Source: Paragordius varius (taxonomy: Eukaryota; Animalia; Nematomorpha). Taken from it: 64,000 nucleotides of DNA. This document shows, in pieces, positions 28,701 to 47,834 of the stretch (positions within the stretch are counted from its first letter, which is position 1; each line of letters starts with the position of its first letter). The stretch lies in NCBI GenBank assembly GCA_964247055.1, contig OZ176051.1, forward strand, positions 3,472,001 to 3,536,000. Reading direction: 5' to 3'. The notes below the pieces were generated by a model, which did no database searches, was not told the origin of the DNA, and saw only the letters and a list, made by a program, of their open reading frames with translations. Position numbers and translations under genes: made by a program.

Positions 28701-29655
28701 TGGCTGGCAGTATAACACCCTTAAAAAAATTAAAATATTAATTAAAATTTGTTTAAAAATTCAAAAAAGAGCACGACAAAAATTATGAGTGGTGTATTTT
28801 TAGACAATTGTGTCAAAACTTTCATGGTCACATTAATATTTAATATAAATCAAAAGTTTTCATATTTCAACCCGAAAATCGCAAATTTCGAAGACATTAT
28901 GTTCAGAGAAGTTTGATGTATTTAAAAACGAATAATTGTGTATAAATTTAACTTCAAAATTGACACAAATGGGTTGTTACCAAAAAATATACTTCCAAGA
29001 AACAAAATGAAATACTATCGGGTTAAAATCTCGAGACTTTTATATAAAAATGTTAAAAACAATATATAACAAAAAATTTATATAAACTTTTAGAAATCTA
29101 ACTAAATATGAAATATTGACAATTTGTTCTTAAATCGATCTAATGTTACAATCAGAATCATTTTATAACATTTAGTGAAAACAGTAACAAAAAAATAAAA
29201 GTATTCACCTGGCCTAAACCCTGCACAAATCTACAAAACATAAACCCGTAAGCGCTCCAACGAGCAACAAATGGACTTATTAGGGTAAATACAGATGCAA
29301 GCAATATTCCAAAGCCGAGAACACTCTTAGAACCATATTTAAAAGACAAGCAACCACCCGGGATTTGGGTAACAATATATCCGTAAAAAAATGATGCAAG
29401 TATGTAGCCTTGAGTATGAATATCCCAATCAAATTTAATTTGTTTATATCGTTGGTCTAGGAGGCTTTGGTTGTTAATTGTCTAATATTAAATGGCATAT
29501 ACTTGATTATTATCACAGATATGCCTTGAAGAAGTATTATGTACCATTGCCACAATAGCGACGCTAAGATTTGTGCGTATAATATAGGCAATAAAAAGCC
29601 CAAAGAATGATAAAATCACTACAACATTCCTAGAAACAGCAAATGATTTAAACAT
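25776..29655 (-). CDS. SLC17 / anion:cation symporter (sialin/VGLUT/Picot-like) MFS transporter, about 587 aa, 10 exons
   Basis: Exons: 29655-29503 (or 29545), 29481-29209, 28719-28632, 28508-28413, 28147-27999, 27732-27577, 27252-27120, 26999-26721, 26308-26226, 26129-25776 (TAA). Motifs: RTNLSVAIVAM, FDWD..QGYILASFFYGY..TQIPGG, RFVQGLGQG, GWPSIFYVTG, PFWAI, LLSSLP, VNPLDLSP, ISNTFGTLSGII. The true 5' end is uncertain. Confidence 0.9.
27262..27519. mobile_element. TATACCATTT-terminal MITE (SLC17 intron 6)
   Basis: Imperfect TIRs of about 55 bp: ATATACCATTTGTACCTCAAATCACCCTTGAACATTTCAAATTTACTCTAAAAT and its reverse complement at 27465-27519. Confidence 0.7.
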
Positions 29656-29739
29656 TGGGTAGTTTTCAAAACCGCGTGCTTTTAGGGTTTATCCATCTGA
29701 AAAAATGCATGTTCACAAATCATACACACCATTTAAATT

Positions 29740-32239
29740 ATGAAAGAAGGTGAAATATTTGTAAAAAATTTAGATGCTGTTTATAAGTTGAAAAAATGGC
29801 GTGAAGAAAATATAAAAAATAGCAAAGAAGTAGTCGAATTGTTTACTAAAATTATACAACCTGATATCCTAAAGTATGGCAATGAATCATGGTTGATTTA
29901 TGAACAAGTTTTAATAGCGGCATTGGATTGTAAAAATATTGATTTGGCCAAAAAATGCTTTCATGCCCTAGAAAAAAAATTTCCAAAAAGTCTCAGAGTC
30001 GCAAAATTATATGGTTACATTTTAGAATATTACGAAAGGTAAAAGTATTAATAAGTTTTATTATATTCACTTGCATCTTTTATTTAATATAATTTTAATT
30101 ATTACTGATCTGTTATTTGTTTTGAATCTTTTTTATAGGTTCGATGATGCAGAAGAAATTTATGATGCACTTTTGGCTAAAGATCCCTCCAATTCAGTAA
30201 AATTATTATTTTTTAATCAGACAGTTAATCTATAAACGCAAAGTTGCATTACTGAAAGCGAGAAATTCCATACCAGAAGCCATTATTGAATTAAATGCCT
30301 ATTTGAAAATGTAAAATATTATATTATTTTATAATAAACGAGATATTAAACCGAAACCGTGGTTTTCAAAAATAAATATTGTTTGTTTTTTCAATCCAAT
30401 TTTAATTTTGTGGGTTTTGTCTAAATAATTAGATTTTCTGTAAATTAAATGGAACGAAAACCATCACTTTAAAAAACGAAACATATTCCAAATTTTGGTT
30501 AACATATTCGAATCCACTAAATCTAATATTACATACTTTTTAATTGTTAAAGATTTATATATGATCTGGAAGCATGGCATGAATTGTGTGATTTATATCT
30601 CGTTATTTTGGATTACGAGAAAGCAGCCTTTTGTATGGAGGAACTTATTCTTTCCAATTCAAGAAACTACTTTTATCATATGAAATATGCTGAGGTTTTA
30701 TATTTCGTGGTGATTTGAAATTAAATGTATTTTAAATTTTATGTATCTTAAAATTTTTTCATGTTATATAAGAATAATTTTAATACATCGCTTTTAGTAT
30801 TTCCAATGATCAAAGTATATTTTTCACCATAAGCTTGTTTTCACATTTCGCTATATTAATAGTATATATATTAACACTTCGATTTAAATTGGGGTATTTA
30901 AATACCCCAGACTATATTTAAGTCGATATTTTTAAAGACTACTAAAGGAAACGGTATAAATTCAAATTTATACTTCTATCCTAATAAAACTATATAAATA
31001 AGCCGAAATATCTAAATAAAATTTAGTTTTGAAAAAAGTGCCATATCAAGTTACTTGGACCATATTTTTATTTTACAATTGCTAAATATCATGTTTATTT
31101 GATTCTATGGCTAAAATTAAGTTTACTTTTTAATCAAAATCACATTTAACTTTATTATAAACAGCAAATGTGGTAAATTCAGGATTTTTATATCTAAATT
31201 ATGCACACATGTCATGTTGTCTAAATTTTTTAGGGTTTTACATCCTAATAAGTAATTATCAAGATTTCGGCTCATTGTTAGATAAGTGCAAACTTTTGTC
31301 ATGGTCAAACAGGCCTGGTTTTTAACAACCCCAATTTGAATCGCAGGACTGAAATGAATGTATTGTATCTAAGTGATAAGATTATAAATCATTTATCCGA
31401 TATTTAGTTTGAAAAAATTTTAATTATATATTTCACTTGATACTATTGAATAAACTTGCTTGTAATTATCAGTTTAATATTTTATTATAATTAAAATTTC
31501 TTGATTTTAGATTAAATATTCGCAAGGCGGAAATGATAATTTGGAACTTTCACGAAGCCATTATTGTTTTGCATATAAGTTAAATCCTACGAATGCCAGA
31601 TCTCTCTATGGAATCATATTGGTTTTAATTAATTTAATTTTACCAATTGCATTTATCACCTATTTTTTATAACTATACGATTCTTTTTCACCAATAATTT
31701 CATACACTTGGGTTTATAACAAATTATATTGTTTTTTAATTCAACAAAATAATTTTATTAAATGTGTCATTTTAAAATTTCAATATATAATTTAGGTTTC
31801 GAATGCATTGCAGCAATATACAAAGGGTAATATTAAAAAGCACAAAGAAAATCAGATATGCTTTGATTGGGCATCTAACCAATTAAATCAACTCTACGGC
31901 CAACACGTAAGCCATAATAAAAAACTTTAATTATTATGTTTTGATTTTAATTTTGATAATTTTTGGATATAATTTGATTGAATTATACAAGACTATTTTT
32001 TGTTTCAACTGTATATAAGGTATTTGTTTATGAATGCCATGTACGTACAAACAATTTTTGGGGGGTATTGTATAAACATTAATCAATACTTGTTAAGAAT
32101 ATCCACCTAAAATTTTTATTTAATATAAGCCTTAAAAATTTTTATTGTTATACAGAAAAAGCGTACTTCGTCCAAAGAAGATTCTACGCTTAACCTGTTG
32201 GGTCCTATGCTTGCTTCATTGCAATTAAATACTGCTTAG
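29740..32239 (+). CDS. EMC2: ER membrane protein complex subunit 2 (TPR protein), 296 aa, 7 exons
   Basis: Exons: 29740-30038, 30139-30196, 30225-30310, 30553-30694, 31511-31621, 31796-31906, 32156-32239 (TAG). Motifs: KWREEN, WLIYEQVLIAALD, YKRKVALLKA, DLEAWHELCDLY, KAAFCMEELIL, YAEIKYSQGG.DNLELSR. The length matches vertebrate EMC2 (about 297 aa) only if the 28-nt intron is removed. Confidence 0.92.
30875..31375 (-). mobile_element. TTAA piggyBac-like MITE, copy B (EMC2 intron 4)
   Basis: TTAA|CACTTCGATTTAAATTGGGGTA at the left and ...GTATCTAAGTG|ATAA at the right; reverse complement of copy A. Confidence 0.75.
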
Positions 32240-38149: not shown

Positions 38150-40590
38150 AGTTAACTTAGCTTTTTATTTATATCTCGTAATAAAATTGCTAAATAATAA
38201 ATGTGGACTTGAGTTGATTGGATTTAGCGATTATAAAATCAAACCGTTTATTAAACGCTTCCTTCAATCGAAACAAAAATTATGAACAAATGTGTAAGTA
38301 AGTAAATAAATGTTCTGATGCTAAGCTACGCCAAGGACATATTTAAATTGAGTGATCATTAGTTTTATGATTAAATAATGGATCTTCAGGATTTAAAAAT
38401 AAATTTTTCTGTAATTCTCCTTTGGAATGAGAGTTGCATAATTTCACAATACTTATAAAAAGAATTTAAAGAAAACGGTAATATTATGGTTGTTTCATAA
38501 TTTTTTAGCGATAAATTGGATATCAATTTTTAACAAAAAATAAATTTAACCATTATCCAAAAATCAAAAATAAATAATTACAAATAATGGTGTTTTATCC
38601 ACATGATGAACAATTCAAAAATAATAATATTTTTTTATTTCTAAATAATGATCAAAAAAATAATTTTTTATATATGAATATTAATATTATTCAACAGCAT
38701 TAGAAAGTGGATCAACCAAAAAGTAAACCAAATCACTGCAATCTTTTCATTTTTCCCGATATTTTGTTTAAGATACGCATTATATATATTTTCGTTTTTT
38801 TCCAATACTGTGTGTAAAAATCGAATCTTTTGAAGAACAACATCAATATTGTTTCAAAAACAATGTTTGAAAAAAGTGTGCAATTAAAATACATGGGCTG
38901 GGATCGTCGTCCCTAAAATCGATAAAATCTTGTATAAATACCTATCAATATATTAATTTGTACGATTTTGTAAGTTTTAAAATCAGTATAAATACTACTT
39001 ATAGAATATCAATGCTTCCAATAATTAACATATTTTATTACAATTTTTGACCTGAAAAGTAGCATAACTTATAAAAGTTGATTGAAGTTGCTAAGCAAAT
39101 TATTAAAGCACAAAAATTTATTTAATCGCTAATTTTTTTCAACTATTTTTTCATTACCATATTGTTATGACGAATTGATATTTGTAGATAATTATTTTCA
39201 AAAATATTAACAATATTTTAATCTCATTCGAGGCAGCGAAAAAAATGTTGGAATTAATATTTCTTGCAAAAACTTTACAAAGCGATTATGATTGGTAGAC
39301 AAAAAACAACAAGGATTAAATGCTTACTAAAAAGATAAATTAATTTATGTGATGGTAACAATAATTTATATAAAAACAAAAAATATAATATTTTAATTAT
39401 TTGTGCTTTTTTGATTGTCAATGTCGAATTCGTTGATAACATGAATTAAAATACTTATTGCACACTTCTATTCATAAAACATGTTGAATATTAATTCTGA
39501 AATTTTAAAAACAATTCTAAAAGTAGATAGCCCAATACTTGTAAGATTAATTATATTAAATTTGGTAGAGAAAAATAAGGAAATAACTTTAAATAGTACG
39601 GGTTTTATATTGCATGCCCTTACGAGCTGCATGATCAAGAATGTTCAAAAGGCGGTTTTTGGAATAAAATGACCTCCACCCCCAATATTAACAAACATTA
39701 TATTGTTTGTTCTATTTGACTTTAATAAATGTTGATGATATATTGTCTAGCTTGAAAAAGTGGAAATCCCGATAATATGTCAGAGGATATGTCAAGTTTT
39801 GGGTATATTGTAGTTTGTCAATAACCGATAAAAATGAACATTAAAAAGCACATAGGGAAATAAAACCCCAAAAACTAATTTTTAGTTGTAAACCTTTTTT
39901 ATGTAGATAATAGGTTATCACATTATGTTTTATCAAAATTTATGTATTATATCAGGATATTTTTTACGACCCTCACATTTTGTGAAATTTGTGTAATCCC
40001 AAAAGCATATGAAATGATATTTATTATGACGCCCAATTTCGTCCGAGTATTTGCAAGTATTTTCGTTGTGGAAGGTACCATATCCAATATAGCTGATTTC
40101 GGTTTTATTAAAATTATCCGGGTTTTTTGCCATATTTATTCTATTATCTTTTTTTGCCACATTTTATCCTCGGATGTTCCGATTCTTAACAGTTGTTTAA
40201 ATATTTAAGGTTATTGATATTAATTAAAGATTGATAAAAGACATCGTGTGTGCCTATATTATTAAACACTCATTTTTATTAAAAATTCCATTTTTATAAA
40301 TATATAGATTATATTTAAGTTTGGATAATTTATTATTACATAAACACAATATATTAGGGCGAGATTGGAGCGACAACAATAAATATATAAAAAATAATCA
40401 TATAGTAATTAATTAAATTAAATATATAATAGCATGTTCCCTTGTTTAGTTTGGTGAAGAAATTATATAATGTAAACAGCAAATTATGTCTAAAAAATAA
40501 ACTAGGAATGAAATAAATTTACAAAGCATAATCAAATTCAAGATAATCATAATTAAAATTCTTCTAAATTTAGTATTGGCTTCTGTTGAT

Positions 40591-43370
40591 TTATTGTGTA
40601 TCATCGGCTAATCCGCAAGTAACTTTGGAAAAGTCAAAAGGAGAGCCTGTAACACTTTCATAAATTTTTAGGACATCATCACACGTTGATTCGAAATGGC
40701 TTGTGGCATCATAACTTTTACTAATATAAATCTATCGAAAGGAATGTATAAATAAAATATCGATTTAAAATTAATTGCTTTTCCTACCCTAAGGCCAAAT
40801 TTAATTGTTAAAAACTATGTAAAAACATAAAAACAAATATTTTTTCCAAAAGACCACTGTACTTTCTTAAACTTGATTTTTTAAATACCTCATTGTCATA
40901 AATTGCAGTGTTAGAAATAGAGAATTAGCACAAGCTTGCAATTAATAAAGTTTAAAAAAGTTTATATATATATGTTTGTATACTTTCATTTTTACGTAAT
41001 AAAATAAAAAAAATTTTATTAACGACGCTAAGCGTAAAATTTTATGAAAATATTACAAAATTTGCGAATATATTTATTACGTGATTTTCTTTGCCATCAT
41101 TGATTGGGACATAGTATGGGGAAACATCGATAAAACGAGCAGAGACAGGAGGCAAAAGCTCAAGACCAGCCATGATTTCATGTAAAGCTTGCTCGGGTGT
41201 TGGTTTTGTTCCCAAGGGAGCTTGAGATTGCGTTGAAACAGTAGCCACATACCAACCCTGGGCCGCTATACAATGCTCATAGGATACGAAAGACACGTAA
41301 ACATCTACAACAAACAAAATAACATATATATATTCATTTTAATCTAATCTCAAAATAAAAGTAACCCAAAAAAGTCATGTGGTTAACTTTCAAAAGTTTA
41401 TAATAAATATTTAATTTATTGGAAATATTTTTCACAAGTGTACCAAAGTTTCGCTTAGCTTGAGCAAATGGTATTATAATTTGGCATGATTTGGAGTTAT
41501 CCGTGTTTGGAATGGGTTGATTAATAAAGCAAATACATCGTATAATCTGCAATCATGTAAATAAACGAATGATTTTAAAATTTATAAGCATATAAATTCA
41601 CTTATGTTTAATGTTAAATTGATTTTAAACCTAGTTGTACTAGCCAAGTTAAATTGTAAAAAAGTCCCATAAATTCTAATGACAATTATATCAATTAATG
41701 CATCAGTAAAGCCTTAGTTTTATAAAAGAAAAATAATGCCAATATATTTATATTTTAGGGTTTGTTAACTTAAAGTTTCTAGCTATTTATATAATTGTGA
41801 ATACCCAGCCATTTTGCTTAACAAGATTGGGGAAATATGAAGGATCCGCAATAATTTTATTGCATCTAGCCAGACCATTCTTGGTTTTTATGCAGTGGGC
41901 TGAATCATCAATATGATGGTTTGTATGACCATTACTTTTTTGATTAGGGGTAGCTTGGCTATTTCCATCCCCTCCCAAATCAATCAAGGCAACTTCATTA
42001 GCGATTTCGTTAGCATCTTTCTTTCTGGGAAAATCTCCACTTTTTCCAAGTTGTAAGACAGGAGTATCCAACATATAAGTTCCACCATACACAGCGCTTA
42101 ACCTGAAATTGTGCATTTACAAAAGTGTTTATAAACACACCTTATTGTATTGTCAATTAAACTCTTAATTTTGTGTTTTATAAACAATATGGTACTTGTG
42201 AAATGATATATATGGATAATATTAGGACTCCATATTCGGAGTTTTGTATCCACGAAGTAATTTCCTCCATAAATTACGATCTTTACATTGTTCTGTGGAA
42301 AGGCTACGTTGATTCAAGTCCATTTTTATATTATCATTATAAGAAAAAAGTGGTCATATATACCATTTGCACTTCAAGAGTGTCCTTGAACATTTCAAGT
42401 TTGTCCTTGAACACTTCAAGTTGGCCTTTGAACACAAGTTGGTTCTTAAAATTTTTAAATTTTAATTTAACCATAATTTTTGCAGGTATATTTTTATTAT
42501 TTTTTAACCTAATTTTCTTTATTTATATTATATTTATTCATTTAAAAATAAAAATCTTTGTTCAAAAACAACTTTTTTGTTTCAAACAAATTTTTTTCCA
42601 ATTTAACAAAATTATTAACTTTTAAATGTTTTCTATGAAAAATTGGTAATAATAACCGAGAAATAATATGTTTTTTAAAAAAATACATATAAAATTTTAT
42701 AAATACCCATAATAAGAAAATAAAGATATACGTTTCTCAAAAATTAAAAGTTGATATTGATATATAATTTATAATAAATAATAGAAAATAGGTAAAACGA
42801 TAAAATAGTTGAATGATTTACGATTCGATTGATAAAAATTAAAAACAAAATAAAAAAGTCAAAGGACCAACTTAAAGTGTTTAAGGACCAACTTGAAATG
42901 TTCAAGGACCAACTTAAAATGTTCAAGGAAACTCCTCAAATGGTATTAAAGTAAAAAAATAAGGTCAAAGTTTATTAGTAAAAGCAGCATTTCCAAAAGA
43001 CAAATATTATATGAATTCTTAAAAGGGTTATATGGGATAAGATATTCTTAATAGCCGTGTTTAACAAGTTAATCATATAGATTCTTTATAATTTTAAGTA
43101 TTTAAAATACAAAAGACTTTAAAAAATTCCCTCTTCTTTATATATTGGGGTTCTCTTCTTTTATAAACTTTTTTCAGTTATATAAACTTTACCAAATATT
43201 AACCTTGCAAAACCTTGAGGCAATTCTCCCAACCCATACAAAGGATAAAGAAAAGGTGATTTTCCATAACACGCTAGCGATTCGCAATACAATCGAATTC
43301 TCATGATTGTTTCAATGGCAGGCTTGGCTTTGTAACTAATGTAATATATATAATTTACTATTCCGGGTAA

Positions 43371-43454
<84 letters not shown>

Positions 43455-44430
43455 ACTAAATAATTAAAAATATTAAATTTGAATACGCATCTTAAATTAG
43501 TTAAATTTTGAGAAAATTTAGCATTATAATCGCCCACAGACACTTTAACCAAAGAAGCCTTTGCTTAGAAAATATTTTAACACTGTTGTATATAAATTAA
43601 GATTTAATTTCACACAGTTCAAAACTAAATTATTCATGAAATAAAACAAACAAGTTTAAAAAATTTAAATAGTTAAGGAATATTATTATGATAAATAAAA
43701 CCTGTCATTAGTCCAAAGGGCCAAAGCATGTCCTGTAAAACTGGCAGTATTATCGTCCAAACTAAATTTTTCAAATAAGGCAGTCATTGGAGTTTGTTGC
43801 ATATTACCAACTTGAACATGATTGTTGGGATCAAATTCGGACACAAAGGTTAAAAACTTTTTAAACCTAAAATTTGAAAAACAAAATTTAAAACTCTTAA
43901 TATATTGTTGAGTATAATAAGGCAAATATATTTAAATTATACCTTCGTTTTTCAAAAATACCCATAAGACCAGAACTTAAAGCCTCAACCTCTGAAGCGG
44001 GTACTTTGTAAGTCTTTTTATCCTTCTCAACATAATTTCCATCAACGACTTTAAAATCAAGGTATTTTGTAACACCAGTATGAATCAATAACTTAACTAG
44101 TAATCCTAAATTTTAAAATTAAATTATTTCAATACCCTTTGCCATCAAAAATTTGGGAATCAAATCAACATTCCAATCTTTGCTCTTTCCAAATTTTTCC
44201 AAATTATTTTTTTCTTGTCCAAAATGTTCATAGACCTTACACATTAAATTAAATTTACTTTTTCTAAGGGTAGTGATGTGCTTTCCCCACCATAATAACT
44301 GTTTTTGTCCAAATGCAGAACTTTTTTGCCATCAACTGATAGTAAACCAGATAAAATACATTCCTAAACATTATAAACGATAAACAGTTAATCCAGTTCC
44401 CAATATAACAACATCATAAAACTCATCCAT
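40591..44430 (-). CDS. GDI: Rab GDP-dissociation inhibitor, 491 aa, 10 exons, with introns of 22, 23 and 30 nt
   Basis: Exons: 44430-44386, 44363-44259, 44235-44136, 44105-43943, 43866-43702, 43335-43204, 42102-41805, 41546-41444, 41304-41081, 40731-40591 (TAA). Motifs: [15 protein letters not shown]|[71 protein letters not shown]. Confidence 0.95.
42360..42946. mobile_element. TATACCATTT-family MITE with 21-nt tandem units in both arms (GDI intron 6)
   Basis: Termini ATACCATTTG and CAAATGGTAT. Left arm carries a roughly (ATTTCAAGTTGGTCCTTGAAC)n array of 3-4 units; the right arm carries the inverted array. Confidence 0.6.
43379..43452. repeat. (AT)n microsatellite, about 37 units
   Basis: Read directly; in GDI intron 5. 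Confidence 0.97.
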
Positions 44431-45414
44431 GAGTTAGGTATTTTATTGATTACGGTCTGGCGAAAAAGCGTTTTAGCTTGTGGTACAATTAAAAAAAATA
44501 ATTCAAAAATATTTTAATAAATATTATAAAAGTAAAGATGAAAAATTTTAAACTAGGTTCCAATTTTTCTCATATTTTAAATTCGCGATATAAAACTTTA
44601 ACATATCACGTTTTGAAACGATAGCCTTAATTAAAATAGTCGGCAAAATATCATCCTATTCTAAGAAAAACCTGACACGGTTGCTAAAATATATTTAAAT
44701 TTTAAAATGCCGTTAGTAAAGACCATTTAAGCTTTAATATAATCATTTCTTTATTAATTAATTCATTTGATAAATACACTATTTTTAACCATAATGGAAT
44801 GCTTATCAATTAAACATATACTCATATATCAAGCGTGATATAAATATTATCCAGATAAAAACATTATTAAAGCAAAAGAGCTGAAGCTGTGGTGTGCTTA
44901 TTTGATATCAAAATAAATTAATTTTTTTAATAAAATATGAAATATTTAAATTTTGACAAATGTTGAAGTGTTTTATATAAGAGGCATGTTAACACACTAA
45001 AAATATTACAGGCTAAAATAATTTAAAAACACCTTTTGGACTTTGTATATTATGATGCTGCTGATATCTCTCACTTAAAATTATGGTTTTAAATACTGGT
45101 TTAATTAGTAACACAAAAGACCAAAAGAATCTTGATAAATTATACATTTGTTATAGTAAAATGCATAAAGATTTCTTGGTGTTTTTAGTTTTGAGCCATT
45201 TAAATTTTGTACATTGGGGGCCATGAAAAAATATCTTGATGAAATAAATTTATTCTGATAGAAATATCAGGTATCATGATGCGTTTGGTGTTGGCTTTAC
45301 GAGTGTTATAAGAAAGTTATTTACACTTTTGTGCTAAGTGCTTTACATCAGAAAATAACAAAATATGAGCACATGTTTTGTAATAATTTTTTTTTGATTT
45401 AATCTAAATACTTC

Positions 45415-47834
45415 TAAATCCAACTTTGAAAAGTCTTGTTAAGTTCATATAGAAGGGGATTGGAACAGCAAAGTTGGTAGAGGTAGAGTGGATCAAATAG
45501 TCGGGCCATATGGATTGGGAGAACGAAACGAGGCCGGGGAAGCACTGATCAATTTTTGTCAAGAAAATGAGATGATGATAACCAACACATGGTTTCCACA
45601 ACACAATAGGAGGTTATACACATAGACCTCTCCATGTGGTAAATATAAGAATCAAATTGATTACATATCCTCAAAAATGGAAAAGCTCTATAATCGATAC
45701 CAAAACAAGCAAAAGCAGCGATTGCTCTAGCGATCATGAGCTTCTAATAACCAAAATCAAACTTAAAATAATTAAAAATAAGGATAAACAGATATACAGA
45801 TATGACACTCGGAACATTCCAAATAGTTTTAGAACAGAAACCAAAGATAGATTAGGAAGATTGGACAATGGATGTAGCTCAGAACAATTATGGGGAACGA
45901 TAAAAAATGTTGTTAATGAAGTGGCAAAAGAAAAAGTGCAGAGAGTAAAGAGGAAAGATAACAAATGGATATCAGAAAAGAGTATAGAGATAGCAGAAAA
46001 GAGGAGAAAAGCTAAATCAAGAGGTGATAATAAAATGGTAAAATTATATAACAAAGAATTTCAACGACAAACAAGGAAGGATTACGAAGATTTTCTTAAT
46101 AAACAATGTCTGGAAGTGGAATTAAATAACAAAAAAGGATTAATGCAACCAATGTTCCAGAAACTGAAGCAAATGACTCATAAACCTTTTATATCATCAC
46201 AAAAGATTAAAAAAGAGAATGGCACCATATTGTGCAAACAAACAGAAGTACGAGAAAGATGGAAGGAATACACCCAAAAACTCTATCAGGCTCCTCAAAC
46301 AAAGGTGTTACAATTAAAAGAAGAAGAACGTGATCCAGATATATTAAGAGAGGAGGTTGAATTAGCCTTAAAACAAATTCCTAACAACAAAGCGATGGGA
46401 TTAGACAATATCCCAATAGAGTTCATAAAAGCTATTCCCGTTGAAAAGTTACACCAGTTATGTCAAAAGGTGTGGGAAACATGTGAGTGGCCAAACGATT
46501 GGGCATCATCTGTATATCTCCCAATATATAAAAAAGGAGATGTACTCCAATGCGAGAATTATCGGAACATATCTCTTATTAGCCACGCTAGTAAGGTCTT
46601 ACTAAAAGTAATACAAAACAGAATGCACAGTATCATACAGACAGAAATACCAGAAAATCAAGCCGGATTTATGAAGGGAAAAAGCACAAGAGACCATATC
46701 TCAAACATGAGAAGGATAATGGAAACATCAAAAGAGTTCCAGAAAGAATTATACATGTGTTTTATTGATTACAGACAAGCATTCGATTCAATTAACTATG
46801 ACTCCTTGTGGGAAACATTAAATTTAATAGGGGTATCGTCTCACTTAATAAGATTGATTAGCTCTCTGTATGTAAAACAAAGAGCGATTATTAGAACACC
46901 AGCGGGGGACACAGACGAAATACCAATCTTGAAAGGAGTCACACAAGGGTGTTGCTTATCCCCTTATCTGTTCAAGTGCACAGAAATGATAATGAGGAAG
47001 TTGGATGGTAAAAATATTGGAGTAAGAATAGGAGGGAGAACAATCAATAATTTAAGGTTTGCAGACGATACCACTCTTATAGCTGAAAGTGCAAATGATT
47101 TGAAGGAATTGATTGAAGAGATTCGAAAGGAAAGTTTGAGGTATGGTCTTAGGCTTAATACTAACAAAACCAAAATATTATGTACAGGAAAAAAGCCTAC
47201 AATTATAATAGAAGGAGTAGAAATAGAAATAGTTAAACAGTTAACGTTTTTGGGCGCAATAATTTCAGAGGATGGGTCTTCAACTCCTGACATCAGAAAG
47301 AGAATAGGATGGGGTAGAGAAGCGATGACCAAATTAATAAATATTTGGAAAAACAAAAGCGTAGGAGTTGAAACCAAAAAAAGATTACTCTACTGTTTCG
47401 TTCTCCCGGTCACCACATATGGATGTGAGAGTTGGACTCTCAGAAAAAAGGACAAAGAAAGGCTCATGGCTTTTGAAAGGAGTTGCTGGCGTAGGATGCT
47501 AGGATACACCTGGAAGGATAAAATTAAGAATGAAAATCTAACTACAGAAATAAAACCTAAAACAAACATCATGGAGATAATTCTAAAAAGAAAGTTAACA
47601 TATTTTGGTCATGTCATGCGATCGAATTCTCTGGAGAAAGATACAATGTTTGGGAAGGTAGAAGGGCAAAGGAAACGAGGCCGACCACCGATGAGGTGGT
47701 TGGATATGATAAAAGAAGAGACCAAAATGACACTGAAAGAGCTCAATATAGCGGTTAAAGATAGAAAAAAATGGAAAGAAATAGTTAAAACTATATCCAA
47801 AAAGTCGTTTACGACTTAGGAAAAACCAACCAAC
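45415..47834 (+). mobile_element. 5'-truncated RTE-clade non-LTR retrotransposon (partial AP endonuclease plus reverse transcriptase)
   Basis: The endonuclease remnant GDWNSKVG..YGLGERNEAG..TNTWF..RLYT*TSP..NQIDY has a stop and a frameshift. ORF 45636-47819 contains NYRNISL, ENQAGF, CFIDYRQAFDS, GVTQG..LSPYLF, NNLRFADD, YGCESWT and RGRPPMRWLD. A 3' hairpin AAGTCG-TTTA-CGACTT lies at 47802-47817, followed by a short CAAC tail. The direct repeat CTAAATACTTC at 45404-45414 and 47835-47845 is the TSD. Confidence 0.92.

Follow-up and report, generated by a model that had tools for sequence, protein, structure and literature searches.

Three very short putative introns at ancestral positions in the Rab GDI gene of a nematomorph

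In a window of 64,000 nt from the nematomorph Paragordius varius (the whole stretch of DNA that was analysed; contig OZ176051.1 of assembly GCA_964247055.1, forward-strand positions 3,472,001 to 3,536,000), the gene for Rab GDI is predicted to carry three genuine ancestral spliceosomal introns, reduced in the nematomorph lineage to 22, 23 and 30 nt, in a gene that would still be active. We give this reading a probability of roughly 0.9. All positions below are counted from the first nucleotide of the window.

The three segments, all on the minus strand and all bounded by GT and AG, were found exactly where the original prediction had placed them, with the same lengths and sequences. Putative intron 1 (44385-44364, 22 nt) and putative intron 2 (44258-44236, 23 nt) are both phase 0, and their removal joins GTGLT|ECILSG and PLEK|VYEHF, respectively; putative intron 3 (44135-44106, 30 nt, GC content 10%) is phase 1 within a Gly codon, and its removal joins MAK(G)|LLVK. 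All three joins agree with those claimed. When exons 1-4 are spliced accordingly, the resulting 138 residues align without a gap to positions 1-138 of the Pfam GDI family (PF00996; E 1.2e-66), scoring 225 bits against a curated cut-off of 23. Retention had been expected to destroy the reading frame, with a TAA noted in the third segment; an in-frame TAA is in fact met within five codons upon retention of any one of the three, not just the third, and the pre-mRNA must therefore lose them all. The three are clustered at the 5′ end of the gene, the remaining six of its nine introns being 76-1101 nt long, and the expectation that introns of more than 1 kb would be found beside tiny ones is borne out within Rab GDI itself by the 1101-nt intron.

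By their termini, by the frame that is restored upon removal, and by a position and phase shared with other animals, the segments carry the marks of U2-type (GT-AG) introns, and would be classed as such. A rough estimate of the probability that three GT..AG pairs stand at fixed places by chance is <1e-6, with the positional coincidence left aside. Given that the protein alignment fixes the boundaries, that each of the six termini is canonical and that the three sites are intron positions in other animals, the segments stand well beyond chance. We infer from sequence that they are removed from RNA as genuine U2-type GT-AG introns of an active Rab GDI gene.

Candidate introns of the same size class could be recognized in other genes of the window. 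In a sialin-like (SLC17A5) gene, a 21-nt GT..AG unit (29502-29482, minus strand) containing in-frame TAA and TAG codons is all that separates two open reading frames of 62 and 107 codons. The upstream frame corresponds to residues 39-72 of human sialin and the downstream frame to residues 100-180, and the 21-nt junction coincides with the loop between the aligned blocks, with no loss or overlap of sequence. As a predicted intron, this unit is the shortest well-supported one of the window. In EMC2, removal of a 28-nt GT..AG unit (30197-30224, plus strand) joins ...DPSNS to LIYKRKVALLKARN...; as a nearer CAG (24 nt) would put the exons out of frame, the distal AG is the one required. The order of the exons across this unit is presumably that of human EMC2, and a Pfam search with EMC2 exon 1 returned no family. 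At 29650-29740, EMC2 on the plus strand and the sialin-like gene on the minus strand stand head to head; less than about 100 nt separates the likely start codons, which makes for a very compact divergent promoter region. Two further GT..AG units, both of 24 nt (53962-53939 and 53663-53640, minus strand), occur in a zinc-finger open reading frame of 194 codons (CYICG...DCLFC type), for which no Pfam match was obtained; these units are in frame and open, and whether they are introns is therefore beyond what sequence alone can tell.

All five homology-supported short introns (three in GDI, one each in the sialin-like gene and EMC2) fall in the 5′ third of their gene. In the SLC6, EMC2 and RBM24/38-like genes, the first intron measures about 100 nt or more (the RBM24/38-like frame was matched in its RRM half alone, across all animals, and so gave no hint of taxon). 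Unlike in genomes of the myxobolid or dicyemid type, where the median is <30 bp, short introns are not dominant in this window. Scans of open reading frame context across the window found GT..AG segments of 15-70 nt that join open frames to be no commoner than control dinucleotide pairs; the same null was obtained with and without GC filters or a TWTAAT box, including in the 18-40 nt range. The motif GT-N8-TWTAAT-N3-6-AG was seen 8 times in the window, with 5.1 expected. These scans are blind to the short-intron class because its exons are short and the background is high, and the proposed class in this window rests on homology in three genes, not on a window-wide statistic. No RNA family (0) was matched in the window by Rfam. 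The GC content of the window is about 28% (about 24-34% in 2-kb steps), in agreement with the 26.9% of the Gordionus assembly (10.1101/2023.06.26.546503). Read together with the GDI homology to Gordionus, this makes a gordiid nematomorph the likely source from the sequence alone.

The five short introns have an internal motif in common. T[AT]TAAT is found in every one of them (GDI 1-3, sialin-like and EMC2; 5/5), 6-13 nt before the 3′ end. In GDI intron 1 the box reads TATAAT (44375-44370, minus strand; intron positions 11-16), and its A at +15 is a putative branch site, at 7 nt from the 3′ end. GDI intron 2 has TTTAAT at the same intron positions 11-16 (44248-44243, minus strand), with a second copy at positions 6-11, and GDI intron 3 has TTTAAT at positions 13-18 (44123-44118, minus strand). 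TTTAAT also occupies positions 11-16 of the 21-nt sialin-like intron, and lies 8 nt before the 3′ end of the 28-nt EMC2 intron. With respect to the zinc-finger candidates, the unit at 53962-53939 has TTTAAT at positions 11-16 and the unit at 53663-53640 lacks the box. In the 21-, 22- and 23-nt introns and in the box-bearing 24-nt candidate, the second A of the box stands at +15, leaving 6-9 nt to the 3′ end; it is at +20 in the 28-nt intron and at +17 in the 30-nt intron. No T[AT]TAAT (0/6) was found in the last 40 nt of the six long GDI introns. If the box occurred as often as in the long GDI introns (0.005 per position), it would be found in five of five short introns with a probability of ~3e-6, for a motif chosen post hoc and with n = 5.

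The sequence TTAAT fits the yUnAy rule for branch sites, and by the rules of U2 pairing it could pair with the U2 branch-recognition sequence through two G-U wobbles. We propose the TWTAAT box as the branch site of these introns, which would probably be recognized by intron definition on a minimal set of signals: a weak 5′ site (GTW), the internal box, and an AG that ends the intron 6-13 nt beyond the box. Apart from their general T-richness, the introns have no polypyrimidine tract of their own. The proposed working minimum from 5′ site to branch point in this organism would be ~14 nt. Since tiny and kilobase introns are found in one GDI transcript, the same spliceosome must handle introns of 22 nt and of 1101 nt that lie a few hundred bases apart. 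Both the size floor of splicing and the minimal distance between 5′ site and branch point are thereby open to direct testing in an animal.

The same signals may be read in another way, namely that the tiny GDI introns are real and are spliced poorly or conditionally, retained copies running into TAA and being degraded or truncated, so that the introns, far from being neutral relics, would serve as a brake or switch on GDI output. The in-frame TAA in every segment and the weak 5′ signals (GTW) would suit such a role, and a passage in PMC13644364 puts the median splicing efficiency of very short microsporidian introns at ~25%. However, Rab GDI is a housekeeping gene, in which the losses at three inefficient introns in a row would compound, and the conserved, position-fixed TWTAAT box argues for recognition that is tuned and efficient. 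For these reasons regulation by poor splicing is considered unlikely, and splicing of the three segments as ordinary, shrunken introns is preferred.

A full model of Rab GDI was built from GT and AG boundaries and then translated. The complete gene (40591-44430, minus strand) has 10 exons and a coding sequence of 1476 nt, or 491 codons plus the stop. Its nine introns, in 5′ to 3′ order, are 22, 23, 30, 76, 366, 1101, 258, 139 and 349 nt long, with GT-AG ends in each (9/9), and the spliced frame of 491 codons is free of internal stops (0). Translation would start at the ATG at 44430 with MDEFYD, the canonical N terminus of Rab GDI; an in-frame TAA lies two codons upstream. Exon 1 (44430-44386, 45 nt) encodes codons 1-15 (MDEFYD...GTGLT) and exon 2 (44363-44259, 105 nt) codons 16-50; they are followed by exon 3 (44235-44136, 100 nt), exon 4 (44105-43943, 163 nt) and a 76-nt phase-2 intron 4 (43942-43867). 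When searched one by one, the later exons fall in order on PF00996, covering positions 86-137, 139-194, 196-238, 262-295, 297-329, 332-396 and 398-433 of 436. The locus is thus intact and is no decayed copy. The closest homologue of the 138-residue N-terminal product is from Gordionus (Nematomorpha), with 79% identity over the full query; identity to proteins of other phyla is at most 71%. With the same 138-residue protein as query, no GDI fragment from the same species was found. Exon 7 (42102-41805, minus strand, 298 nt) encodes an insertion of ~45 residues relative to the Pfam family, between profile positions ~260 and 262; the insertion has many charged and polar residues. Exon 7 as query gave five weak matches, with no nematomorph protein among them.

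For comparison of intron positions, the genomic DNA of partial GDI models from Limulus (horseshoe crab), Helobdella (leech) and Dissostichus (teleost) was used. Exon chains were derived for these loci so as to translate exactly to the annotated proteins, and the proteins of all four genes were then aligned jointly. The site of GDI intron 1 (alignment column 15, phase 0) is shared by all four genes, with introns of 2817 nt in Limulus, 8997 nt in Helobdella and 5155 nt in Dissostichus. The site of intron 3 (column 85, phase 1) is likewise occupied in all four (3376, 5755 and 444 nt, respectively). At the site of intron 2 (column 52, phase 0), the window and Dissostichus (2719 nt) have an intron; in Helobdella an intron of 6332 nt is offset by no more than one codon, where the alignment is gapped, and Limulus has none. 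The lengths of the flanking exons are also alike: exon 1 is 45 nt in all four genes, exon 2, of 105 nt in the window, has counterparts of 108 nt (Helobdella) and 111 nt (Dissostichus), and exon 3 measures 100 nt in both the window and Dissostichus. The intron positions that had been stated for vertebrate GDI1 hold as seen in the teleost Dissostichus (5155, 2719 and 444 nt), not in human GDI1. The idea that ancient introns have shrunk near to the minimum is supported by the positions and phases shared with Limulus, Helobdella and Dissostichus; introns 1-3 would accordingly be old introns, already present in the bilaterian ancestor and shortened in this lineage.

In the window, exon 4 runs on continuously (EALSS|GLMG) across the site of a fourth old intron, which Limulus, Helobdella and Dissostichus all have in phase 1 after EALAS. 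Nine codons downstream of this site stands the 76-nt phase-2 intron, whose position is shared with none of the three outgroups (0/3). The absence of the one and the presence of the other may reflect a loss plus a gain, or a shift.

If the locus were a decaying pseudogene, the segments could be small insertions that are never removed. This is very improbable: after nine GT-AG removals, all 491 of 491 codons are open and the product is colinear with Pfam GDI as far as position 433 of 436, three random insertions would hardly all be GT..AG units at ancestral intron positions and in the right phase, and the sole listed polymorphism (44280) is synonymous. It is about as hard to sustain that the true introns use other boundaries, through skipping of an exon or through larger introns that swallow exon 2 or exon 3. 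Such a reading draws on the splice boundaries having been deduced from sequence. Yet a product without exon 2 or exon 3 would have lost conserved portions of the GDI fold that are gapless against both Pfam and Gordionus, no alternative GT/AG pair in or beside the segments keeps the frame, and the exon lengths match those of the orthologous fish and leech exons. The boundaries given above for introns 1-3 are thus retained in the preferred reading.

Four public DNA runs (X1-X4), from three samples and two studies, with X4 filed under a second organism label, were used to check the assembly at this locus. The runs are of DNA, as exons, introns and intergenic sequence are covered to an even depth and contigs continue through introns. 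Searches for runs containing the locus, one of them with the 298-nt exon 7 by itself, yielded none of RNA. A contig of X1 (44195-44406) spans introns 1 and 2 without a gap. Two contigs of X3 are likewise gapless, one (43934-44181) spanning intron 3 and the other (44183-44482) introns 1 and 2, and a single gapless contig of X4 (43935-44444), differing at 4 of 510 letters, spans all three. Assembly error at the segments had been named as a possible refutation of the introns; contigs of the four runs cross all three without indels, and such error is therefore excluded. That the segments are spurious short insertions left by assembly or polishing of long reads is barely credible, for although AT-rich, low-complexity sequence is prone to indel errors, the independent contigs of four public runs are gapless over all three, and artefacts would not form canonical GT..AG units at conserved intron positions. 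The only difference listed for the region is 44280 G>A, seen in all four runs, which changes the codon of Ser43 from AGC to AGT and is synonymous in the spliced GDI frame; it may be a polymorphism or an error of the assembly consensus.

Ciliates, nucleomorphs and microsporidia are known to have introns of 15-30 nt, those of chlorarachniophyte nucleomorphs being 18-21 nt. The introns described here are like those of ciliates and nucleomorphs in size range, in their canonical GT-AG ends and in the conventional spliceosome that would remove them. Those organisms, however, are protists with uniformly tiny introns, whereas the present case is an animal gene in which tiny introns stand beside kilobase ones. 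The genome report of Schistosoma mansoni reportedly describes small 5′ introns and large 3′ introns, with a minimum in the high 20s to 30s of nt. The GDI gene is like the genes of S. mansoni in this polarity of intron size, small at the 5′ end and large towards the 3′ end; the minimum reported for Schistosoma lies above the 21-23 nt found here. For the ciliates, a passage in PMC13644364 cites intron lengths of ~25 nt in Paramecium and 15-16 nt in Stentor.

Among animals, a September 2026 survey of 51 genomes found introns of <30 bp only in myxobolid myxozoans and a dicyemid; it predicts that further lineages exist, and nematomorphs are unmentioned (PMC13644364). The original prediction had listed ciliates, chlorarachniophyte nucleomorphs and dicyemids as the lineages with introns near 20 nt; this list stands, with the myxobolid myxozoans to be added (PMC13644364). 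The median intron is 27 bp in Henneguya salminicola and 22 bp in both Thelohanellus kitauei and Myxobolus rasmusseni (PMC13644364). As in the myxobolids, the introns in question are animal GT-AG introns of ~20-30 nt, at conserved positions between conserved exons. In myxobolids, however, short introns prevail throughout the genome and determine the median, whereas six of the nine GDI introns here are 76-1101 nt and the tiny ones form one class among others. The hosts differ as well, a reduced cnidarian in the one case and a large bilaterian in the other. A further contrast with the myxobolids is the box found here, a defined hexamer (TWTAAT) whose distance from the 5′ end is fixed.

Dicyema japonicum is cited in a passage of PMC13644364 as the only other animal case of introns of <30 bp. 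Dicyemids offer the same picture of a bilaterian parasite in which old introns have shrunk to <30 nt with their positions kept; nearly all dicyemid introns are short, whereas the tiny introns of GDI cluster at the 5′ end. The closest homologue of the window's GDI is from a nematomorph, not a dicyemid. The GDI case is the same in kind as the known tiny-intron animals, and differs from them in that such introns form a minority class beside long ones in one gene. A search of the literature on nematomorph or horsehair-worm introns found no paper reporting short introns, and the word "intron" is absent from the Gordionus genome paper (10.1101/2023.06.26.546503); a Current Biology paper on Acutogordius and Nectonema might hold a remark.

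Given a nematomorph source, the GDI introns would represent a third animal origin of introns of <30 nt, this time in an ecdysozoan that is large and free-moving and whose genome is of ordinary size. We suggest, tentatively and at somewhat less than even odds, that Nematomorpha may be the third independent animal lineage with introns of <25 nt, and one of a different kind: a discrete class of 21-30 nt with a TWTAAT branch A ~15 nt from the 5′ site, concentrated towards the 5′ end and set beside ordinary and transposon-inflated introns. Annotation and completeness tools with a minimum intron length of more than ~20 nt will break such genes. The case bears on intron evolution, on the limits of splicing and on the annotation of nematomorph genomes.

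At the other end of the size range, GDI intron 6 (43203-42103, minus strand), at 1101 nt the longest of the gene, contains a MITE-like element at 42370-42942. The element has inverted arms of 66 nt (42370-42435 and 42877-42942) that are built from 21-nt tandem units. Word depth over the element is ~1000x that of its flanks in the four DNA runs, and it therefore belongs to a very high-copy repeat family; with such an element inside this intron, long introns are taken to be inflated by repeats. Word depth is also high in the bins 40201-40367 and 40702-40868. In GDI intron 5 (366 nt), an (AT)n microsatellite of ~100 nt (43365-43467) makes up more than a quarter of the intron. Just upstream of the GDI promoter, on the plus strand, is an open reading frame of 727 codons (45636-47816) with an RVT_1 domain (E 1e-35), which is probably a non-LTR retrotransposon. 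Nowhere else in the window is GC content as high or skew as strong as in this stretch, 45636-47816.
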